A stretch of DNA of 63,236 nt, counting the filler, from Syncephalis fuscata S228 (taxonomy: Eukaryota; Fungi; Zoopagomycota), in assembly GCA_025786725.1 (NCBI GenBank). It is 3 parts of 3 records of this genome, joined end to end, with 100 filler letters (N's around TTAATTAATTAA, not from the genome) between each part and the next. Parts side by side here need not be neighbours in the genome. Positions count along the whole stretch, not along the records: positions 46,061 to 63,236 come from JAHLTZ010000196.1; 2 more parts are not named here. The stretch is one strand, 5' to 3'. A model generated the notes under the pieces. It had not been told where the DNA came from and did no database searches. It was given only the letters and a program-made list of their open reading frames with translations. Both the position numbers and the translations under genes were made by a program. Every line of letters starts with the position of its first letter. The stretch's first letter is position 1. Shown here one piece after another: positions 46,061-63,236 of the stretch.

Positions 46061-47659
46061 ATTGTAAGTTTTATTATTTATAAATTAATTATGTTATTTA
46101 CTAATTGTACCAATTGTTTAATATAACAGATGGTAAGTGGCAGTGTGTATTAGCTGACTATAATTAACTATGCTATTTACTAACTATACCAATGTTTAAT
46201 ATTAATAGGCCGTAAGTTGTATTGTATATAATTGACTATAAATTAACTATACTATTTACTGATTGCATCGATATTTAATATTAATAGGATGTAAGTGGTA
46301 TTGTATATTAGTTGGCTGCATTAACTATGCTATTTACTAATTGTACTTATTTAATATTAATAGGGGGTAAGTGGTATTGTATATTAATTGACTATACATT
46401 AACTATGCTATTTACTGATTGTATTAATTATTTAACATTAATAGTTAGTAAGTTACATTGTATATTAACTGACTATATACTAACCATATACTATTTACTA
46501 ATGGTATTAATTGTTTAATATTAATAGGATGTAAGTAGTATTGTATATTAATTAACAATATATCAACTATGCTATTTACTAATTGTACCAATTGCTTAAT
46601 ATTAATAGGCGGTAAGTTGTATTTTTGACTTAATTAATTACTCACTAATCACATGCTACTTATTAATTGTATTAATTATTTAATATTAATAGCTCGTAAG
46701 TGATATTGTATATCAATTGACTACTCACTAATTACATGCTATTTACTGACTGTACTAATTATTTGATATTAATAGCTAGTAAGTGGTATTGTATATTAAT
46801 GGATTATACACTAATTATATACTATGTGTGTCAACAAACTAATATCAATAGAATGTAAGTTGTTATATATTAATTGATTACTGACTAATCATATTATGTA
46901 TTATGTATATTAACAACTTGATATAATAGGTCGTAAGTTGTATTGCGTACTTATTAGCTATTGACTAATTATATACCATGTATTGTGTATATCAACAACT
47001 CAATATAATAGAATGTAAGTAGTATTGTATATTAATTGACTATAAACTAATTACATGCTATTTACTGTGTATTAATGACTTAATATTAATAGCCTGTAAG
47101 TTGCATTGTATAGTACCTGACTATGCATTAATCACATTCAATCTATTATGTATATCAATATATCAATATTAATAGGCAGTAAGTGGTGATATTGTATATT
47201 AACTGACTATACATTAACTATGCTATTTACTGATTGTACCGATTATTTAATATCAATAGAATGTAAGTTATGTTGTACATTAATCGACTATGTACTAACC
47301 ACATGTTATTTACTGTGCATCCATTTAATATAATAGGCGGCAAGTTTTACTGTGTATTGATTGATTGTTGACTAATTATATAACATGTATTGTATACATC
47401 AACAACTTAATATTAATAGAGAGTAAGTTACATTATATATTAATTGGCCATAAACTAATTATATACTATGTACTGTATACGTTAACAAATTAATAGCTTG
47501 TAAGTTGTATTGTATATTGATTGACTATGCACTAATCACATACTATTTACTGTGTATATCGATATATTAATACTAATAGGCTGTAAGTATCATTGTATCT
47601 TAATGGCTTATATATTAATTATATGTCATGTAATATCTTTATTTGTAAATACAGGATAA
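46061..47659 (+). CDS. Microexon gene 2 (5'-truncated by the gap): Cys-rich peptide ...YGRWVRCAPKCQSCKCETC*
   Basis: 19 fully flanked 3-nt exons plus one at the gap edge: (ATT) ATG GCC GAT GGG TTA GAT GCG CTC CTA AAT GTC AAT CCT GCA AAT GCG AGA CTT GCT, then CAG|GA-TAA. Phase-1 join ends TGA TAA; one GC donor at 47340. Confidence 0.83.
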
Positions 47660-47967
47660 TCGATGGTCTCAAGACATTAGCATTGGTAGTGTAATCAAAC
47701 CACTATTCCAATACACTTTAGGTATATATTCGGTAAAAAGCAAGATCATTTGACAACTACGCCGTCCAGTCTATTTATATATCAAGTTTTGGCCAATGCT
47801 CCGGTTTATCCAGTCTTTAATCAATGGAATCATTATTTTACCAACAACTTTGCAACTGGTTGTCTCTATTCAACTATGCAAGCTTATAGTAATAAACCTA
47901 TGGTTCCATCTTAATTATATACAATCAAATTGCTATATTTATAATCATGTCCTATTTGCATCCAATG
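47630..47967 (+). other. Conserved last-intron end and 3' UTR of microexon gene 2
   Basis: Inverted paralog of 3142-3480. Confidence 0.85.
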
Positions 47968-49577
47968 CTTAACAGATTAGACTAGCACAAGTTATGTCAC
48001 TATATTATTTACAAATGATATAGATTATATATACCGTTGTTGAAAATGGGACATTAATACTGTTTATTATTTGCTTTGGCTGTGTAAGCTGCAACGAGAC
48101 AAGCAATGAAATATTGAATGTAATAACATTTATTTCATATTGTACATTTGTATATTATGCTATCAACTATAATGATATTTAAACAATTAATAAACTAAGT
48201 AAATATATTATGCAACAGTAAAAAAAAATAAAAATTATTATAAGATAGAAATTTTTAAACAATGATGCAAAGCAAATGCTATAAAATTGGTCGAGATATT
48301 GACTAATATACTATAGTCAGGATGGAATTGTAATTAAATAAGTTGAATATGAATTTAATTAATAGTACAAACAAGGTGTAATCAGTAAAAACAATATGTT
48401 TTCTTGGGTTTACGCTTACAGTTGCTTATTTCTATCCAAATGAAATTTAGGTTTTTTAACTTTTAAATAAAAAGAGTCCGCCGCGATTATCAAGAGTAAT
48501 TTTATTGTTTTTATTTATGAGTTTCTTGCTAAGCAGTAAAGCTTCATCTCCGCCACATCTAACTTGTGAAAATACACCATGTATCAACAAAGCATTTCCG
48601 AGTAATATAGGTTTGAATGTAGTTGTCATTAACATATTATTAGAGCGTGAATGCAAACAATACATTATAATACGGCCACTAGTTACTTAATCATAAGACA
48701 AAGTAAAAGCATTAGTAGCTAGTTATTTTTATTATCTGTTCATGGCAATATTAACGAATAATATAAAAAACAAAGCCTACGTTATATGTGTAAATCCAAA
48801 AAACAATTTAAGCTAAAACTACAAAGTATTTTCAAAATATCGTGACCGCTAGTGCTATTCATAAACATTGTGTAATAGAATATGTTGCAAAGGGAAGAAA
48901 AAAAGCAACACTCTGCTCTAAATAAGCCAATAATAAGCATTTAACCAAGTATATCTTCCATTTATAATCTAGAATTCTATATTAGTTTAGTTTAATGCAA
49001 TGCAGCCATAAGCAAATGTAAAAATAGTTCAATTTTTGACAGAATGACCTTAATTTACTAGTATTTCAAGTAGATTCAATCAACAGTGTTGATGATTTTA
49101 TATTTGGGTTGTAGCACACTATTGAAGGTTACAATGGTTCAGATGATAGCTGTATCAATACCAACGACCAAGGCCAACACACGTTCTTTATGATTTTGTT
49201 TAAAAGTATGCCACAATGCTATGCCACCTCTATTGACAGTGAATCAACACGGCGAATCAAGTTTCCTTTTATTTACTTGTTTGAATTGCCCAAAAGCATC
49301 AACAAAATATAATAAAACCTGCACACTAATCAATGAGCACTAATAGCTAGCCGCACAATGTTTGCTAATACGCTCGAAATTCTTTTTAAATACAGGTTTC
49401 ACATGCAGTCCACCAACCACCCATTAGTCCTTTCTCTTCTATTGTTCTATTGTTTTAAAGTGAAAGAAGAGGATCAGCGCATGGCATGGCCTATATAATA
49501 GCTCAATTGTAGTTCTAAATAGCCCTTTGACATTCAGTCGATATCTTTTAGTTTGTATTCATTTTTCAACCACCATC

Positions 49578-49977
49578 ATGATTTATGATAGTAAATCAAC
49601 AGAATCCATAATCCATGATATCAAGTCAGCAGAAGAGTTTAAAACCATAGTCCAGCAAAACGATGACCGCCGCATATTTGTTATCTTTTACATCACTTGG
49701 TTCGGCCATAACAAAAGAGCACTCTCGATTGCTGAATATGTAGCCAAAGAATGCAGAGACACTCTTTTCATTAAAGTCAATGCCGAGAAATTAGAGGTCT
49801 GTTTATTTCTATCAAACTACGAGAGTATTAAACTAAATGAATGCTTTTTAGACACTCGTCGATGCATATCATATTGATGGCTATCCTACAATGATGCTAC
49901 TAAAAAGCGGAACAAGGATCAACTATCCAGGACCATTTAGCTACGATCATATCAAGCGATTTATTAATATTCATTAA
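49578..49977 (+). CDS. Thioredoxin-fold protein lacking CXXC (2 exons)
   Basis: VIFYITWFGHN in place of WCGPC; FIKVN; IDGYPTMM cis-Pro loop; TATATAA at ~49492. Confidence 0.7.
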
Positions 49978-50140
49978 ATAAACTGAAATTTACTAGCCAC
50001 TATTCATTATACTACTTTTATTTGGACTGCAGTTGCAATTGATCGGTTAATATCATTTCCTTGTTGTTGGCACGAATCTTTTTTACGGCCATTCTTTCTT
50101 TCTTAGTCCCATTCTCGTCCTAGCTACCGTCCAGAAGACG

Positions 50141-50539
50141 ATGCACACACTCACCCGTCAAGAAGAGGAAAAGCTGTTGGAGGCCTTTCGGATCAAGGCA
50201 CGAAAGGCGTGCGATCCCGATATTAAAGGTAGTGGATGAATTTTATGGCAACTTGCTGCTTGCTCGTTACTGACTAGACGAATTCAATGTAGCCTTCGCC
50301 GCGTGTGCAGCTGGACGCACAGTCAGCGTGATATTTGCCTGTCGAAGCCTGCAAAAGCAAATGAACGCTTGTCTCAAGGCCTAGTAAGTAGACAAGTAGT
50401 GCGCCTCATTCCCTCTACATTTGCTTATGTATATAATAATCTTATTAGCGGTAAAAGTGGCGAATTGGAACGTATGAAGTTGGGGCGACTACAGGAGAAA
50501 CGCGCTGCTGCATCTGCTAATGGCATCAATCCTACATAG
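50141..50539 (+). CDS. CMC1: Twin CX9C cytochrome c oxidase assembly factor (3 exons)
   Basis: Spliced MHTLTRQEEE...KACDPDIK|AFAAC...VIFACRSLQKQMNACL. Confidence 0.75.
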
Positions 50540-50970
50540 TCAGTAGCAATAATAGCCACCGCAACAACGAGAAACTGAGCGGTAGATGTTTTAAATCACA
50601 TACATTTTATCATCGCTAGTAAAGAATCATGCTACTATATTCAAACAGATGTATAATGTTGTTTCATTAAAGGTCTCAATGGCGAAAAAGAAATGCCAAC
50701 CATTCATAAGACCAAGTAATAAAACTATGACCGGTCAACCTCAATCGAATTAGCCGTCGTCGTAATTTATCTGTATACAAGGCTTTAAATCGCGCAGTGC
50801 ATCCAATTGCCATCACTTTTACTCAACAGACTAGCAAACAAATCGATTTCTGTAACACATTACTATTACCACACCTGCCACAGCTCTTTCCACCAATTCT
50901 ACTTATAGTTGCTTTTATTGTTGTTATTGTTCATCTTTCTAGTCTCATTTCTTTACGTATTAAATCTCGA

Positions 50971-52611
50971 ATGTCGTACCGTAAATCTAATAACAAGGGG
51001 TCTAGAGATAGCGCTCAGTCAAATGGAATGACAACCTCGTCCACGCTAATACCCTCCGTATCGTCAGAATATGCAACGACAGCTGCCGTAACGCCTTCTC
51101 AAATAGTTAATGACGCGTTGTCATCATCGACAATGTCAAATACGTCTGGTTCAGCAAAAGACTTGGTGAAATCAGTGGCACAAATATCGCTTAACCAATG
51201 GCTATTGGTATTATCGTTGATTGCTGGTGGCTGTTGCAGTAATGTCTACACTATGGAAAAGATTATAAGGCAAGTATTAGACATATCATTGTGAATCATT
51301 AAACTTGTATTAACTATCACATTTAGTGGTGTACCAAAAAGCGGTAAATTTAAGAAAATATTTAATATAGTGTTTATTAATGGTAATCAATATAAATAGG
51401 TGATTTAGTAACATTTATGCAATTCTTATTTGTGGCTATCGAGGGATTTGTTGGACATTTCCAACCTTCACGCTATGGCCTGCTTAAACCACGAGCCGTA
51501 CCTATTAAGCGATGGCTGTATATGGTTGCTCTATTCTACACGCTGTCTATGTTAAATAATAGAGCTCTTGGCTATCAAATATCTATGCCACTCCATATTG
51601 TATTTAGATCAGGTGGTCTACTGGTCAATATGATATTTGGATGGTTATTGGCTGGAAAACGGTAAGTTATCTTATTAATTAAGTAGAAATGAGCCATTAA
51701 CTATAACAACGATTAGTTATACGTTAATGCAAGTTGGATCCATTATGCTAGTGACAGCTGGTGTAGTAATGGCCACGGTCTATTCTAATCTATCATCATC
51801 ATCATCATCCAAGGTAAGTAATTTGATATGTTAATTGAGTATACACTACTAACTAGGGACAATACTAGACGAGTGATGATAATGATGCATCCTACACCGA
51901 GTGGCTAATTGGCATTTCACTTTTAGTTATGGCTATGTTTTTTACCGCTGGTCTAGGATTATTACAAGAAAAAACCTATGCTACCTATGGCAAGCATTGG
52001 CAAGAATCAATGTTTTATGTGGTATGTTTGGCCAATCAATTCAAATAACATCCAGCTTATGTAAATATTCTCTCTATTTATTCATGTATAGCATTTTCTA
52101 TCTTTGCCCATTTTTTTCTTCGTAAGACATGATATGATGAAGCAATTTGAGGCATTAAGTGCCTCACCATTAATTGACTTACATCTATGGACACACATCT
52201 ATTTACCGGCATCCATCGCATCTATTACTAATCTAATTCTGCCTTCGGTAGCAATACCCGAGTTATGGATTTATTTAGCACTGAATATATTGACTCAGTA
52301 AGTAGTATAAAGTCTAGCATGGTCACTGCTAACAAATATATAGATACATCTGTATTAGTGGTGTTAATCGACTGACCTCCATTGCCTCCTCATTAACCGT
52401 CAATCTTATTTTAAATATTCGAAAAATGATAAGCTTACTATTATCGGTATGGATATTCGGTAATCAACTTGGATTGATGGCCAGTCTAGGCTGTGCTTTA
52501 GTGTTCTTAGGTACATTATTCTATTCTTATGCCGGTACTAAACAAAGCACTACCACCACCATATCATCATCCAATACAGCGACAAAAACTAAATTAGAGA
52601 AACAGCAATAG
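50971..52611 (+). CDS. YEA4: UDP-GlcNAc/UDP-xylose nucleotide-sugar transporter (SLC35B4 family)
   Basis: GGCCSNVYTME; ISMPLHIVFRSG; HWQESMFY; TQ|YICISGV; SLTVNLILNIRK. Confidence 0.9.
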
Positions 52612-52812
52612 TATAAATTAGCAGTGTTTGCACATAATCCTTATAATAAATCTAATGATGTCTAACATTGATGCGATTTAAACTATTTAATGTCTATAGC
52701 TAGTGTCATCATATCGATACATCTATCTACTATATTGTTATTATATTAATCCTTTGTAACAAATTCCATCTAATAGTTTATTGTACAATCGAGATAGTGT
52801 TAAAAAATAAAG

Positions 52813-54105
52813 TTAAGAGATCTCTGCTTCAATTTCATTTTCAAGCCAATCGTAATTATCATCATCCTCACTATTGCCATCGATATCGTCATGTTTCTTC
52901 TCTTCTACATCTTCCATAGCAGCTGCAATAGCATCATCCAAATCATCTATATTCATTTCATCGTTGTCATCTATTGGTGAGTTAATAGGAGGTGGTACTT
53001 TGGCAAGCATTGATTTAACTATGCTTGACTGGTCTCCTCGTGTCTTTTCTTCGTCGGAATCGCTAGTAGACTCGGAACCATCTCCATCTGAAGACGAATC
53101 GGAACTACCAGAACTAGAAGTGCCACTATCGGAAGATGTACCACTAATGTCGTCGTCATCATCATCCGAACTTGTAGAAGAGTAAATATCTGTATTGGCA
53201 GCCGTATTTGCTGGTTGTGCTATATTGCTAGTATTAACAGTAACTGGCGTGTAAATCGAAGGCTTTTGGTTCACTGAGCTGGGCAAGTGTCTAACTGTAT
53301 TTGATGAACTAGGCAGAACTGGGTCTACTTCAATAAAATCATCTTCAAAATCATCATTCAAAACAGGCGATGATTGTTTTATAGATGCATTCGACGCAGT
53401 TATAGGTCGTGCCTTGATTGCTTTCTTGGGTAATTTAATTGTTTCTTTGTTTGATTTTGTGGTAGCAGTAGTCGTAGCAGCGGTGGTGGCAGTCTGGCGT
53501 GTGGGTAACATAAGTGTTGTATTGCTTTCATTTTTGTTTTCTTCTGTTTCTTTGTTATTAGTGCTACTGTTGCTACTACGTGATGTAGATGCTGCATATT
53601 GAAACTGATAGACTTGTGGCTGATGTTCTAATGTAAACGACTATTATTATATATTATTAATAATTAACTATACAGAATATCAAAGATACACTTACATTGG
53701 TATCTGGATCAAATACAAGTAGACAATCAGTAGCGCGTGCATCGGCTCTTTTTCCAGTAAATTGCGGCCCGTTCTAAATCATAGCTCTATTAAATATCTA
53801 TCTATTACAACCAACTATGGTACTTACAGCATTAGCATCGCCCCAGCCTAGCAATGCATCGCCCGTCTTGTCATTGCATGATAAAGTGCCATTTCGAGCT
53901 GCCCCTGCTACTTGCTTATTATCTATGATGAATAAATATTATTATAGATCAGTATTAAAAAGACTCATTATTAAACGCAATGACTGTGCATACACTTTAA
54001 TATAACTAGATTGTCGGTATGTTTGTTTGGTGGTCCTGAAGAGTCGGTGAATGTGTCACTAATTATAACGTCAAAAGTGCCTTCGGTAGGCAGTGGTGCT
54101 TCCAT
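52813..54105 (-). CDS. ELL-associated factor (EAF domain) with acidic Ser-rich tail
   Basis: DCLLVFDPDT|NSFTLEH in exons near 53625-53740; low-complexity acidic C-terminus. Confidence 0.6.
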
Positions 54106-54337
54106 TCGTGTATTGATGCAAGTGTTGTTTTGAAAAGTGAAGTGGTAAAGAAGAAAGATTTGTAGTGGATGTCCGCCAATCATTGGATTCAAACTTAATA
54201 ACGATTTGAGCACACTGATGCGCTGACGTAGTCCATTTCTGTATATTTGTGTTCCCCAATACATTATTTATCGATATAGGACTTAGTACATGTATAATTT
54301 ATAAAGATTTTTGACAAGTTAAACGCAAACAGATATC

Positions 54338-55918
54338 ATGATGATCCACAACCAGAGACTATTATTTGCAACACTCCCGCTAGATATTTACAAAGAGCTG
54401 GCCAATTGTCTCGATGGTCCCGAATTAGTTCAGTTATTACGTGTAAATAAACGTATCAGTAGCTTTTTATTGGAGTATAATAAACGATGGAAAGCCCTTT
54501 ATGAGAGCAGATATAATCTACAGCACTACAAAGAACGGACCTGGTTTCGCTGGTTTTTGAGTGGATGCCGTGGTCCTAAGGGTCTATCAGTTCCATGGGC
54601 ACTTGCCTATTGCTTACGTTGGCAAACCGAGCAAAATATTCGTGGTCAAAACTACAATTTATATTCCGTAGACATCAATAGTGATATGAGCCTTTGTATT
54701 GCTATGTCTCGTAGTAGTTATATAGTGCTAGATTCGCTTGTATATAGCAAAGCAATTCTGTTAACTCTTCCTCCACCACACTTTGCTAAATCGACACTAA
54801 CTTTTACATCAAGAACTGACATTAAACAGCAGCACTTTAATTACGCAGACTACAACTATCACGATAAAAGCCACTTTCGTTTTACCGACCATTATTTAGT
54901 TGCTCGTAGGCTACATTTCGAACCAGGTTTGCATGTACGCCCACTTGGACGCGGTACATCATTTCACGTTGAATGTGGACTTGAAGACAATTACAAAGGC
55001 GTTAATCCAAATCGATCACTTGATGGATTCGAAACAAACTATATGACTGGTCATTATTATGCTATCACTTCGAGCTATATGGACATTGGATCACAGTGGT
55101 GCCTGGCTATTGTGCCGACAGATCCACAACAGAATGGCAATCATCATCGTGTGTATCATTTGGCAACACGACGATGGTGTAGCGAGCAATTAGTCACACC
55201 TATGGAAAATGCTACCTGGAGAGGAGCAAGGCTATGGCGAGAATACTCAAACTTTTGTATTGTGGCTATTCTAAATACACAACAAAGTAACGATAACCGT
55301 AGACAATTAGTACTACAGCTATGGCAGTTTTCATTAATTGCTGTATCTCCTCGATGCATCTATACAAAGGTATTTTTAATCCAAGAGGATCTGGAATGTG
55401 GTCGGGATTTCAATAGCCATATCTATCGTTTACCTGATGATTGGCTTCATATGCAAGTTACTACAGCAACGTCGCTAGATATTAATATTTTCTATCAGCC
55501 AGAAGTGAAACTATTAGCCTCATCGACCGCTTTATACACTAATAATGAGGCATATGTTGAAATAATGGATAAAAATTGTTGGCGTACCGATAAAGCAGAA
55601 ATAATTAAGACACAATACTATATACTCGATAAAAACCGAATTGCCGCTTATACTCATGAAAATAATATGATTATCTATTCTTTATTGGATGGAACAATAT
55701 TGTGGCGTGGTGTCATTGGCCACTATCCACTTAGAACTTTACTGAATGAAATAATTTATTTTGAAGACAATGGTCAAATACACCAAATGGACCTTGAACA
55801 ATATCAATCAGCATCCATGGCATCATCTATTGGGAAGATAAAATCATCTGAACGATACCTGACCACTCTTTCTAGCGATAGTAAAAGTTCATTATTTATT
55901 TATGACTTTTCATTTTAG
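54338..55918 (+). CDS. Intronless F-box protein, lineage-specific family
   Basis: LPLDIYKELANCLDGPELVQLLRVNK...WKALY F-box at the N-terminus; 526-aa ORF. Confidence 0.75.
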   Translation: MMIHNQRLLFATLPLDIYKELANCLDGPELVQLLRVNKRISSFLLEYNKRWKALYESRYNLQHYKERTWFRWFLSGCRGPKGLSVPWALAYCLRWQTEQNIRGQNYNLYSVDINSDMSLCIAMSRSSYIVLDSLVYSKAILLTLPPPHFAKSTLTFTSRTDIKQQHFNYADYNYHDKSHFRFTDHYLVARRLHFEPGLHVRPLGRGTSFHVECGLEDNYKGVNPNRSLDGFETNYMTGHYYAITSSYMDIGSQWCLAIVPTDPQQNGNHHRVYHLATRRWCSEQLVTPMENATWRGARLWREYSNFCIVAILNTQQSNDNRRQLVLQLWQFSLIAVSPRCIYTKVFLIQEDLECGRDFNSHIYRLPDDWLHMQVTTATSLDINIFYQPEVKLLASSTALYTNNEAYVEIMDKNCWRTDKAEIIKTQYYILDKNRIAAYTHENNMIIYSLLDGTILWRGVIGHYPLRTLLNEIIYFEDNGQIHQMDLEQYQSASMASSIGKIKSSERYLTTLSSDSKSSLFIYDFSF

Positions 55919-56695
55919 CAATCCAAATAAAAGTTTATAAATATTGGCGATGAAAATATAATGTGTATGACAGCAAGATGGATTGATATTTACAATAAAT
56001 ACAGTCTGTAATAAACATATAGTTTTTATTAATAGCCCTAATCAGTGGATAATATATTGATCGATAATATGCTGAATGAATAAATCGTGGCTGAAGAATA
56101 AGAATACATAACAGTGTGGTATTGTCATTGTAAATAGAATGTAGAGTATAAGAATGATGATTACATAATATCATTTGTTACTTATCTTGTTAGTATTCAA
56201 TAAACTTAATCTTTTAAAAATATTATTATTTGAATCAAAGTATAATAGCATGAATACAGGCAGCAATACTAATGCCTTACCTCTAAATATATATATACGG
56301 CATAATAACCAGGAAAAACAGTGCAAAACAAGAAAATAATACAACACCGTAAAAACATTAATGCATAAAAAGAAGTACTGATAAGTAAAATTGCTCAAAT
56401 AATAAGAAAGAGTGAAGAAAGAGCAGTCAATGGAAAGAGTATTGACAGTAGTATATCGCGCTACCACTATCAAGATTGCAGAGTTATTGCCAGATAACCT
56501 GCAATTGCAATCAATAGTAACAACAAAATATACAACGAGTATTACAAATATTAATAAAAATATAGTTGCTTGTAAATTATTAAAAGCAATTTGGTATTGT
56601 ACTTGACCAGCTCCATTTTTATAAAAGCATTAAGACAGCTTTTCATCGTAATTAAGCCGTTTATTACATAATAATTATTGAACAATAGCAAATTA

Positions 56696-57721
56696 TCAAT
56701 CTATAGTCATATCAACGATGGGTTGATCATTTATATAATTACTATCCAGTTGTCTTTCCTCTTCATCTTCTGACGGTAGTTCTTCAATCGTAAGACCTGG
56801 GTAATTGCTGTGTTGATACTCTGTAATTGGATATTGATTATTGGGCCGATAAAGCGCCATAGTACCTGTTGATGGATTATCTTCATAATGAGTATAATTA
56901 GAGTGTGACCAGTGTTGTGTAGGTATTGGTGGTATTGTTGTTTCTTTTGCACACCACCAATGATCCGATGAACTAGGAAAGGTAATTTTATCTGGTAATC
57001 GTGATGTTGTAGATTTACCTTGAGACCACGGCACAAGATCTAATGACAAAACATTTGATGGCTGCTGTTGTTGCTCAGACATAGTTGCATCGAGTAAATC
57101 ACCATTTACTTGCTGCCTATTATTATTAACTGATGGTAAAGGTTCCCATGTATCCATCGATATAAGGCGGGTGCTATTCTCGTTTGACAAAGATTTACCA
57201 TTGTAATTATTTAAATGATCTGATATAGTAGCTGAGCCAATAGAACGATTTGCATCATTGTAACGCGCTCGTTTCTTTGATGACGATAATGAAGGTGTTG
57301 ATACAATTGGATATGACATAGAAGGTGACCGTACATTAAAAGAACGATGTTCATCATAATAGTTAGTGTTGTCGCCACCACCACCATAATCATCATCATC
57401 GTTATCATTTCGTCTTCGTTTACTGTGTAGTTGTGGTGATTTCGGCACTGGCTTCACTGTATGACACCAATTGGATGTACGTAATCTTTTTAAATCTACT
57501 GCCACATCTTCATTATCTTGATCAAAATGATCATAATTTTGAGATCGTTTTTGAGGTCGAGAATTTCTTTCGTTATTAGCACATTGACTATTGTCTTCTG
57601 GTTCAATATTATTGTTTCTTTGTGGAATAAAAGGAGAAAGCAACGGGTTAGACCCATTTGACGAGACCAATGGCGTCTGATGACTCGGTTGGAAAGACGA
57701 AGAATACGAGTAATGGTTCAT
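56696..57721 (-). CDS. Hypothetical disordered protein
   Basis: 341-aa ATG-initiated ORF in AT-rich context; no recognised domain. Confidence 0.7.
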   Translation of the reverse strand: MNHYSYSSSFQPSHQTPLVSSNGSNPLLSPFIPQRNNNIEPEDNSQCANNERNSRPQKRSQNYDHFDQDNEDVAVDLKRLRTSNWCHTVKPVPKSPQLHSKRRRNDNDDDDYGGGGDNTNYYDEHRSFNVRSPSMSYPIVSTPSLSSSKKRARYNDANRSIGSATISDHLNNYNGKSLSNENSTRLISMDTWEPLPSVNNNRQQVNGDLLDATMSEQQQQPSNVLSLDLVPWSQGKSTTSRLPDKITFPSSSDHWWCAKETTIPPIPTQHWSHSNYTHYEDNPSTGTMALYRPNNQYPITEYQHSNYPGLTIEELPSEDEEERQLDSNYINDQPIVDMTID

Positions 57722-58168
57722 AGTGGAATACTGACCAAGTAGCTTGTGCTTAATAAATCAGTAAATAGATAGTTGAACAATTCACGACACAATAGCAATG
57801 CTTCAAATAATAGTCAACATAACAGTAACGACCCACTAATAGCATTTGCTGTAATAACTGTAAATAGTGGTCGTTTGAAGTGTATTGTCGTAAGTACAAG
57901 TGTAGTGAGTAATACGCAACTTCATTGCCTTAAAAGCAAGTAGAAAAAAGTGAAACATGAAACCACCGGTGTTTGTAATAAGAAATCGAGTCATTCAACT
58001 AGAATAAAAGATATAGAGTTCACTTATAAATAAATAGCAGCAGTCGCACTTTGTAGAGACAAATAGAAGAATATTAATAGTGTGGTGTAACAAGTGGTTA
58101 GAAAAGAAATTGCTAGAAGATTCACGAAATATTAATATAGTTTATTTAATTTATTTATATAATAATAT

Positions 58169-61211
<3,043 letters not shown>

Positions 61212-61317
61212 AATATTTAATATAAATATTGATACAAGTATGAATATCAATGGTCAATCAGTATGAAAGAGAGAGAAAGAGAGAAAAGAAGAAAAATATT
61301 TCTTGTTCTTATTCACC

Positions 61318-62575
61318 ATGTTACGACGCGTAGTCATGTCGACTGTAGTGTCACGTCCACTGCTTGTCTCTAACGGTTAACTACCGGTATTATGAGTGGC
61401 CAGCAGTATCATTGTTATACTGGTATGGGTCTACACTCTAATGTACGCCCTAGTCTAGTTCGGCCAACACCGATGACAACAATGATGAAGCGTTACTATG
61501 CTGCTGACCCACAAGCTAACAAAGCACGAGCCAAATCATATATGGCGTAAGTAATACTCTATTAGAATAGATTAATTAACAATAGACTAACTACTATCAA
61601 TATAAATATCAATATAATTGATGACATCTTAATAGTTATTTAACTGGAAAGCAACTGCTTTATTTGTAGGTACAGGTATTGGTTTATTCTGGTATTTCCG
61701 TTCAGAAAAGAAGAAAATAGAAGAGACACGTAAGTATTAGTTAATTAAATATTAAATATTGCCATAATAACATAATGTGAATAGGCAAAGAGCAATATGC
61801 TACCAAGAGTTACGGTAAACCAAAACTTGGTGGTCCATTTGAACTCGTTGATCATCATGGTGAAATACGATCTGATCGAGATTTTCTCGGTAAATATATG
61901 TTGGTCTATTTTGGATTTACGCATTGTCCGGATATTTGTCCCGAGGAACTTGATAAAATGGCTGAGGTTGTCGATGCACTCGGTAAGTAAATAGTTAATT
62001 ATTGTTGTTGTTATATTGTTATGTTATTAATGTTATGCTTAGATAAAGTACCCAAATTAAAAGATGCGGTTGTTCCTGTATTCATTACATGTGATCCAAA
62101 CGTGATACAGTAGAACGCGTACGTCGCTATGTTAAAGGTAATTACATAGATGATAACGATATAGTATATGTTATATACCATTATTATATATCCTATCTTT
62201 ATTAATAACATTTTATTTTAATTAGAATTCCATCCTAAAATGATTGGATTGACCGGTACACACGAACAAATAGCTCAAGTAGCCCGTGCCTATCGTGTCT
62301 ACTATAGTAAACCACCCGATGCTCAAGAAGGAGAAGACTATTTGGTTGATCATTCCATCTTCTTCTACTTGATGGATCCTCATGGCCAATTGGCAGACTT
62401 TTACGGCAAAGATTTCTCAGCTGAATATGTAGAGAAGAGTATTCAAAAACATATGAATGATTATTTGGCTACTACTAATGGTCAATGGGTGGATGTCTCT
62501 TCACCAGTAACACTGCCATCATCATCATCTTCATCATCCTCGGCTACAATGACTTCAAATAAATCGTCACAGTAA
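61318..62575 (+). CDS. SCO1: Cytochrome c oxidase copper chaperone
   Basis: [46 protein letters not shown]. Confidence 0.93.
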
Positions 62576-62736
62576 TAATAAAGCCCGTCTTTTTTCCGAT
62601 ATACTCCGGTTCATCCCGATTCACAGTGAATTACTAGAGCTATATTAGCGTTATAAACAACTTGTATTCTTTCTTTCGGTATCGACTGCTCATTCTGTTC
62701 TTTTCTATCTTTATTACTTATTGCTATAGCGTTGAA

Positions 62737-63236
62737 ATGTATCGTGTCTTGCAATCTTCTGCGTCGGCGCGTGCCGTTTACAAGTCGATGTCGGTAAGTA
62801 TTATATATATATCTATATAATATAGTTTGACAATACGTGCTATTTACTAATCACTTGGTTATTAGGCACGTCGCAATATTTCGTCTTCGCTGGCTGCTTT
62901 GGTAAGTTTACATGCATGCTATAGTTGTGTTTGTTAGTGTTTATTTATGGATCTATTAAAGATATGAATGGAGCATATATATACAAGGGTAATAGTGCTG
63001 TTGTTGTCGCTCGTTGACGTCACTCCTTCTTTTATACCTTCAATTTAAAATTGCTTCTTCGTCTCCTTTGTTGTTCTTTTTCTCTACGTTATTATTGCTG
63101 AATAACTGACTAACCAACACTACTATGGATACTGCGACACAACAGCAACAATTTCGCGTGGAACGTGATACTTCGGCGAATTAAAGGTGCCGGCCGACCG
63201 ATACTGGGGCGCTCAAACTCAGCGGTAACTATATTA
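62737..63236 (+). CDS. FUM1: Fumarate hydratase, 5' part (runs off the window)
   Basis: Presequence exons, then FRVERDT(F)GELKVPADRYWGAQTQR; a 1-nt deletion appears near 63171. Confidence 0.88.

Follow-up and report, generated by a model that had tools for sequence, protein, structure and literature searches.

The window analysed here, a stretch of 63,236 nucleotides (filler letters included) joined from three parts of the Syncephalis fuscata S228 genome (GCA_025786725.1), contains a 17-kb piece (46061–63236, JAHLTZ010000196.1) that opens with a tandem series of intron-like repeats lying 3 nt apart. The locus raises the question of whether these repeats are spliceosomal introns, and whether the triplets between them are exons that together spell out a protein. 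S. fuscata is a haustorial mycoparasite of the Zoopagomycota. The reading that we favour, at a probability of about 0.75, is that the locus is a gene with an extreme micro-exon architecture, of which the window holds the 3′ two-thirds.

Organization of the array

The array and the sequence that follows it comprise the features below.

46061–47654, + strand: intron-like array of 20 tandem units with 3-nt exons, its 5′ side truncated at the contig edge
46061, 46130, 46209, 46288, 46364, 46445, 46528, 46609, 46693 and 46776, + strand: starts of the first ten triplets
46852, 46930, 47012, 47093, 47176, 47260, 47337, 47420, 47497 and 47580, + strand: starts of the last ten triplets
46130–47582, + strand: 19 complete 3-nt exons, predicted to encode the C-terminal 19 residues of the peptide
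47340–47419, + strand: the sole GC–AG unit, with donor GCAAGT; the NCBI strain has the same GC donor
47583–47654, + strand: last intron, with acceptor AATACAG, 58–68% identical to the other units and off the repeat consensus
47655–47659, + strand: double stop, TGA (T at 47582 plus GA at 47655–47656) and TAA (47657–47659); TAA TAA in the NCBI strain
47655–47915, + strand: last exon, essentially all 3′ UTR, with 85–99% identity among several copies in read runs
47891–47896, + strand: AATAAA, a poly(A)-signal-like hexamer read from the sequence

The intron-like parts measure 66–81 nt (typically ~75 nt), and whole units, triplet included, 69–84 nt. Their recurring signals are GTAAGT at the start (once GCAAGT), one or two branch-like motifs of the form CTAAT, CTAAC or CTGAT, and (T)AATAG at the end. 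A search with the pattern [CT]AG-NNN-G[TC]AAG returned 19 matches on the + strand between 46130 and 47580, spaced 76–84 nt, in addition to the ATT triplet at the edge (46061); in the rest of the 17-kb piece the pattern matches once per strand. Despite many indels within the units, not one of the 19 junctions departs from the 3-nt spacing. The pattern count and this exact spacing bear out the claim of the initial annotation that 20 exons of 3 nt share the same phase. Its translation also held: with one base carried over, the joined triplets read YGRWVRCAPKCQSCKCETC and then TGA TAA. The introns of the array are in phase 1, such that each triplet completes one codon with its first two bases and opens the following codon with its third.

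Tandem Repeats Finder describes the array as an 83-nt repeat of 15 copies with 72% matches, with higher-order periods of 160, 248 and 331 nt that fit block duplications. Because the array is a tandem repeat, the recurrence of the motif reflects descent rather than 19 independent events.

The 5′ end of the proposed gene and comparison between strains

The upstream part of the array is present on an NCBI contig (L001) that is 98.3% identical to the window across 17 kb and is therefore this locus as it occurs in a closely related strain. Ordinary genes surround the array (thioredoxin, Cmc1, UAA transporter, EAF, DEAH helicase and SCO1), and a homology search matched a neighbouring ORF of 526 residues to a S. 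fuscata hypothetical protein at 99% identity. This ORF (54338–55918, + strand) is intronless and has no Pfam match, and its protein-language features lie near those of F-box proteins; the S. fuscata orthologue was the only relative found. On L001 the array carries no annotated gene model.

A signal-peptide exon upstream of 46061 had been anticipated in the initial annotation. The array on L001 does extend beyond the window edge, and begins with a signal-peptide-like exon whose frame leads into the Cys-rich frame. This first exon (L001:29–121) is followed by an intron of the form GTATGT...TAG, a 6-nt exon and further micro-exons; the 32 internal exons comprise 29 of 3 nt, two of 6 nt and one of 1 nt. 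Specifically, one frame of exon 1 contains a 17-residue hydrophobic stretch with a mean hydropathy of 2.3, downstream of which come a site of small residues and a short stretch that closes with Arg-Arg, and the exon looks, by its sequence, as though it encodes a signal peptide plus pro-segment. The hydrophobic frame leaves one base at the donor, so that the downstream triplets are all read in the Cys-rich phase, and it is the only frame free of stops through all 32 internal exons. The full peptide deduced from L001 has 34 residues and 8 Cys, arranged as C-x2-C-x2-C-x9-C-x3-C-x2-C-x-C-x2-C and followed by the double stop; the window portion corresponds to the last 19 residues, with 5 Cys. The exon 1 translation had no relatives among proteins of 22–70 residues, a result that says little, and exon-by-exon searches in collections of billions of proteins likewise returned no relative.

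The ATG on L001 is offset by one base from the frame of the hydrophobic segment, in that a T-run has 3 letters where 4 would fit. In addition, the 1-nt exon causes a frameshift if included and leads to a stop nine codons on; skipping it restores the frame. Misassembly, a variant in which this exon is skipped, or decay of the gene could each account for the L001 copy.

L001 also bears an insertion of ~405 nt (L001:1515–1921) inside an array intron, between positions 46297 and 46298 of the window, from which it is absent. Read on the minus strand, the insertion has an A-rich tail and a head that is tRNA-like by eye, and thus the look of a SINE-like retroposon; ARAGORN found no tRNA in it and Rfam made no call.

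The strains differ by 4.3% across the array, by 8.4% over the last exon and by 2.9% immediately downstream of it, and by 0.2–1.3% from 49401 on, in genes and spacers alike, making the micro-exon gene the most divergent region of the locus. Paralogue conversion and fast evolution are both possible sources of the divergence across 46298–49400. Many of the window-private variants in 47841–47915 fall at sites where read contigs have the L001 letter. Of 48 triplet positions compared, 3 differ between the strains, with R>K and S>Y as the resulting changes, and every Cys codon is retained.

These observations bear on the possibility that the family is real and that this locus is a decaying or non-functional copy, which we regard as doubtful, though it deserves to be taken seriously. 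The ATG of L001 is out of frame with the signal-like segment, yet a T-run miscounted by 1 nt is typical of assembly error; the stop that follows inclusion of the 1-nt exon is matched by a frame that is restored when the exon is skipped. The retroposon-like insertion occupies one intron of L001, whereas the window lacks it and has all 19 junctions and both stops intact. Finally, although no other part of the locus has diverged as much as the gene region, 8 of 8 Cys codons have been retained and the two residue changes are conservative.

Variation of triplets and introns

When the 20 units are aligned, the triplet columns have entropies of 1.7–1.9 bits, which ranks them near the top of the 96 columns, and the splice signals GTAAGT and AATAG form invariant columns on either side of them. 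Pairwise identity is at the random level for the triplets (27%) compared to 60–88% for the introns, and the most alike intron pairs (88%) bear unrelated triplets. The two parts differ also in composition, with a GC content of 47% in the triplets and 23% in the introns (Fisher p = 7e-5).

The initial annotation had singled out openness of the frame and Cys enrichment, to be judged against shuffled exon order, and both are upheld at this locus. Shuffling the 20 triplets of the window leaves the frame open in 2.2% of cases and yields at least five Cys in 3.4%, with both together in 0.34%; for the full gene of the NCBI contig, the corresponding values are 1.4% for an open frame, 0.7% for at least eight Cys and 0.07% for both.

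As to RNA structure, five array units folded no better than their shuffles (z −1.3 to +1.0), and Rfam returned no RNA family at the gathering threshold on the 17-kb piece, nor at E ≤ 0.1 on the array of the NCBI contig. A snoRNA-host reading was rejected, the units having neither C/D-like boxes nor a significant fold. A CRISPR array fails as well, since the variable part is 3 nt and the conserved part ~75 nt, the reverse of the true CRISPR layout. A non-coding minisatellite with even variation is at odds with the invariant GTAAGT and AATAG, the exact 3-nt spacing and the hypervariable, GC-rich columns.

Evidence from read runs

One of the read runs (X2) contains a contig of 1953 nt that skips four GT..AG introns of neighbouring genes, and the run is therefore RNA in practice. 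The introns defined in this way are 55–65 nt long, with GTAAGT or GTAGTG donors, a TAG end in four of four and a CTAAC-, CTGAC- or TTAAC-type branch motif in three of four. The array units carry the same splice signals as these RNA-defined introns of the same genome.

In seven X2 contigs the match breaks off at 47656, where the last acceptor was predicted, and is preceded by a median of 137 unlike letters that resemble neither intron nor the end of exon 1. The consensus of these loose ends terminates in GCT|A, which corresponds to the last triplet of this gene plus the A that L001 has at 47655; it represents a mixture of copies, and its Cys frame meets a stop two codons before the end. Many contigs are 85–99% alike on the last exon, yet their agreement before the junction is only 0.53, and in read-run contigs the similarity of the other copies to the last exon stops at ~47914–47966. 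The summed k-mer depth in X2 is 164,532 over 47645–47842, compared to 5–190 in the array and ~350 for the neighbouring transporter transcript. The last exon exceeds neighbouring genes in depth by a factor of several hundred, and the array by a factor of ~1000; these ratios sum over paralogues and are only a rough guide to expression. The multigene family proposed in the initial annotation fits the RNA run, in which an abundant last exon is shared, several related copies occur and the upstream sequence varies.

Between the end of one intron and the start of the next, X2 contigs have, by our reading, 3, 6, 6, 9, 15 and 15 nt, all multiples of 3, as expected from partly spliced precursors or from longer exons of paralogues. 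A small run labelled 'DNA?' (X1) has coverage on the array and last exon but none on the neighbours, suggesting that the genome contains many copies; one of its contigs matches the genome colinearly through the last two introns. An abundant contig of the RNA run (depth 1254) skips 131 nt within the last exon (47739–47871), with the non-canonical ends GC..TT, and probably derives from a paralogue with a shorter UTR.

In the contig summaries, where most matching contigs are paralogues, no transcript joining the triplets of this locus was seen. It could accordingly be asked whether the array is an intron-derived minisatellite within one long intron or UTR, removed whole or stepwise, with a Cys-rich frame that arose by coincidence. 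The array is indeed a tandem repeat by descent, and true satellites and CRISPR arrays also match the search pattern (see below); such false positives, however, have an unchanging triplet, unlike the array, whose triplets are GC-rich and vary more than any other part of the unit, and the 3-nt spacing has stayed exact at 19 of 19 junctions despite unit indels. Ahead of the last-exon junction, RNA contigs carry sequence that corresponds to neither an intron nor the tail of exon 1. The Cys-rich frame runs on from the signal-like exon, with openness and Cys content beyond those of shuffles. Such a minisatellite is therefore very improbable.

Nature of the product

If the triplets are exons, the product need not be secreted: translation from an ATG internal to exon 1 would give a cytosolic, metallothionein-like metal binder. 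The C-x-C and C-x2-C motifs, the small size and the very high transcript level do resemble those of fungal metallothioneins, and the first ATG on L001 is out of frame. It would nevertheless be an odd coincidence for untranslated sequence to contain, in frame, a 17-residue hydrophobic stretch with a small-residue site and Arg-Arg, and the analogous array of a soil fungus (L023) follows an intact signal-like exon. We consider a cytosolic product very improbable.

Least probable by our estimate is translation in frame 0, as an ORF of 51 residues from an ATG triplet at 46130 through 32 codons of the last exon to a TGA at 47751: it is open, with an ATG start, in both strains, and it is the only frame in which the RNA-contig loose-end consensus is open, but we reject it because seven of the eight strain differences in its last-exon part are non-synonymous (one is synonymous), stops separate it from the signal-like exon, and 1.8 billion representative proteins yielded no convincing relatives, only two weak matches (1756 and 1898 residues) with no aligned stretch reported. 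With the frame-0 ORF rejected, the last exon is read as 3′ UTR.

A proposed route of splicing and evolution

In the micro-exon gene that we propose, the first exon would encode the signal-peptide-like part together with a short pro-segment that has Arg-Arg at its end. It would be followed by ~32 internal exons, nearly all of 3 nt, separated by spliceosomal introns of 66–81 nt that are tandem copies of one another, and the last exon would provide the double stop and a 3′ UTR of ~260 nt. The product would be a secreted peptide of ~34 residues with 8 Cys, in which each triplet accounts for one codon and all introns are in phase 1. An exon of 3 nt is presumably too small to bind the factors of its acceptor and of the next donor simultaneously, so that the introns would have to be removed one by one; successive removal by intron definition, probably co-transcriptional, is the route we envisage.

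The same arrangement may shape how the gene evolves. With one repeat unit equal to one codon, unequal crossing-over or conversion could add, remove or swap codons without a frameshift; indels within the introns would be harmless, and skipping any exon would keep the frame. A multi-copy, highly expressed family of secreted Cys-rich peptides could diversify quickly by this means. A role at the interface between mycoparasite and host is a guess.

If confirmed, the gene would represent a limit case for the spliceosome, in which ~30 consecutive exons of 3 nt force the ordered removal of neighbouring introns, and one in which a single codon is the unit of duplication, loss, recombination and alternative splicing. 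It would also reveal, in an obligate mycoparasite, a highly expressed and unannotated family of secreted Cys-rich peptides that would be candidate effectors or antifungal peptides, and show that gene prediction and RNA-seq alignment have a blind spot.

Arrays in metagenome contigs

A scan of metagenome contigs with the exact pattern returned 54 loci. Twelve are CRISPR arrays (L002, L011, L017, L020, L021, L029, L036, L037, L039, L043, L044 and L046) and about a dozen are simple repeats or satellites with a constant triplet, all of them false positives. In the CRISPR matches the 37-nt repeat contains TAATAG-GGA-GTAAGT, and their constant 'triplet' and variable spacers serve as a negative control. 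A further 28 loci are intron-like arrays whose triplets vary; they fall into four families unrelated in sequence.

AT-rich group, 23 loci: L003, L031, L042, L045 and 19 related loci (WNFZ/WNGA/WNGF contigs, L048)
Soil group: L023:6073–7190, also L014 and L047; 45% GC, beside NACHT/ankyrin-like and reverse-transcriptase-like ORFs
L054:1090–3570: more than 30 units of 71 nt (a length also given for the introns), with Gly/Lys/Tyr-rich triplets
L034, 1–1350, − strand: ~20 units of 70 nt with Glu/Ala/Lys triplets and some GTGAGT donors

The AT-rich group belongs to a eukaryote of 15–26% GC, with homologous introns of 77–110 nt and 3-nt exons that are mostly AT[TAG]; read in phase 1, these give stretches rich in Tyr, Asn and Asp. 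At the three loci checked (L003, L042 and L045) the arrays join, in frame and in phase 1, to a conserved N-terminal kinase exon (..FQQNF.NWTSGN..), and the same join was recognized at L031 by eye only. We take these kinases to resemble the expanded kinases of Glomeromycotina. In the soil group, the first exon of L023 is intact and signal-peptide-like; behind it come 14 or more 3-nt exons in phase 0, with homologous introns of 60–81 nt between them, and the product is rich in Ser, Tyr and Asp.

On balance we lean towards regarding arrays of an intron plus one codon as a distinct and recurrent fungal way to build and evolve coding sequence, in which unequal recombination and in-frame skipping would allow single-codon cassettes to be inserted, deleted or shuffled. 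Such arrays would have had separate origins, encoding secreted Cys-rich peptides in Zoopagomycota and N-terminal kinase extensions in a Glomeromycotina-like lineage, and appearing also in three or more further soil fungi. Gene callers would have overlooked them, since 3-nt exons are beyond what any aligner or predictor places. As the same architecture occurs in unrelated environmental fungi, including expanded kinase genes, this blind spot may be general.

Relation to known systems

We found no report of tandem arrays of 3-nt exons in a literature search that covered only a minority of subscription journals, and this extreme architecture is seemingly undescribed. Several known systems share parts of it. 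In superfamilies of the conotoxin type, signal and untranslated parts are conserved, the Cys-rich mature peptides are hypervariable and expression is high; their mature region lies in one ordinary exon, unlike the arrays, and any likeness would be one of families, judged from read contigs and from gene 1 of the initial annotation. Fungal metallothioneins are cytosolic and have no signal peptide, and the in-frame signal-like segment argues against membership. Introner-like elements are near-identical introns with unusually stable predicted folds, dispersed in unrelated genes; the copies seen here are tandem, and the five units folded did no better than shuffles.

Recursive splice sites amount to zero-length exons that leave nothing in the mRNA, and tandem duplication can yield new introns. 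Stwintrons are nested introns (PMC8469720). The array resembles both systems in its abutting splice sites used in sequence and in introns that arise by local duplication, but here each duplication adds an intron plus one codon. In the fungus Coprinopsis cinerea, annotation with long reads identified 27 exons of 3 nt in 26 genes (PMC12230235), indicating that fungal spliceosomes handle internal exons of 3 nt, and even of 1 nt. Those are lone micro-exons in ordinary genes, whereas here ~30 consecutive ones would make up the whole mature coding region.

The micro-exon genes of flatworms have exons of 3–81 bp, long introns and secreted products (PMC10526429). In Schistosoma and other flatworms, as in the gene proposed here, a 5′ exon encoding a signal peptide is followed by a run of micro-exons in multiples of three and a longer 3′ exon, the products are small and secreted, the families are multi-copy in a parasite, and exons can be skipped in frame. 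As in those genes, coding is mostly by micro-exons in multiples of three, with 19 complete 3-nt exons in the window, and the flanks may be of the same type: the last exon is present and the signal-like exon, known from L001 only, is in frame, though its ATG is 1 nt off. The flatworm introns are long (up to 5 kb) and unrelated to one another, whereas those of the array are 66–81 nt and 60–88% identical tandem copies; nearly all internal exons here are at the 3-nt minimum, the organism is a fungus, and no sequence relationship would be expected. Overall, we rate the flatworm micro-exon gene as the closest known system, with the fungal array at its extreme end and following a distinct evolutionary logic.
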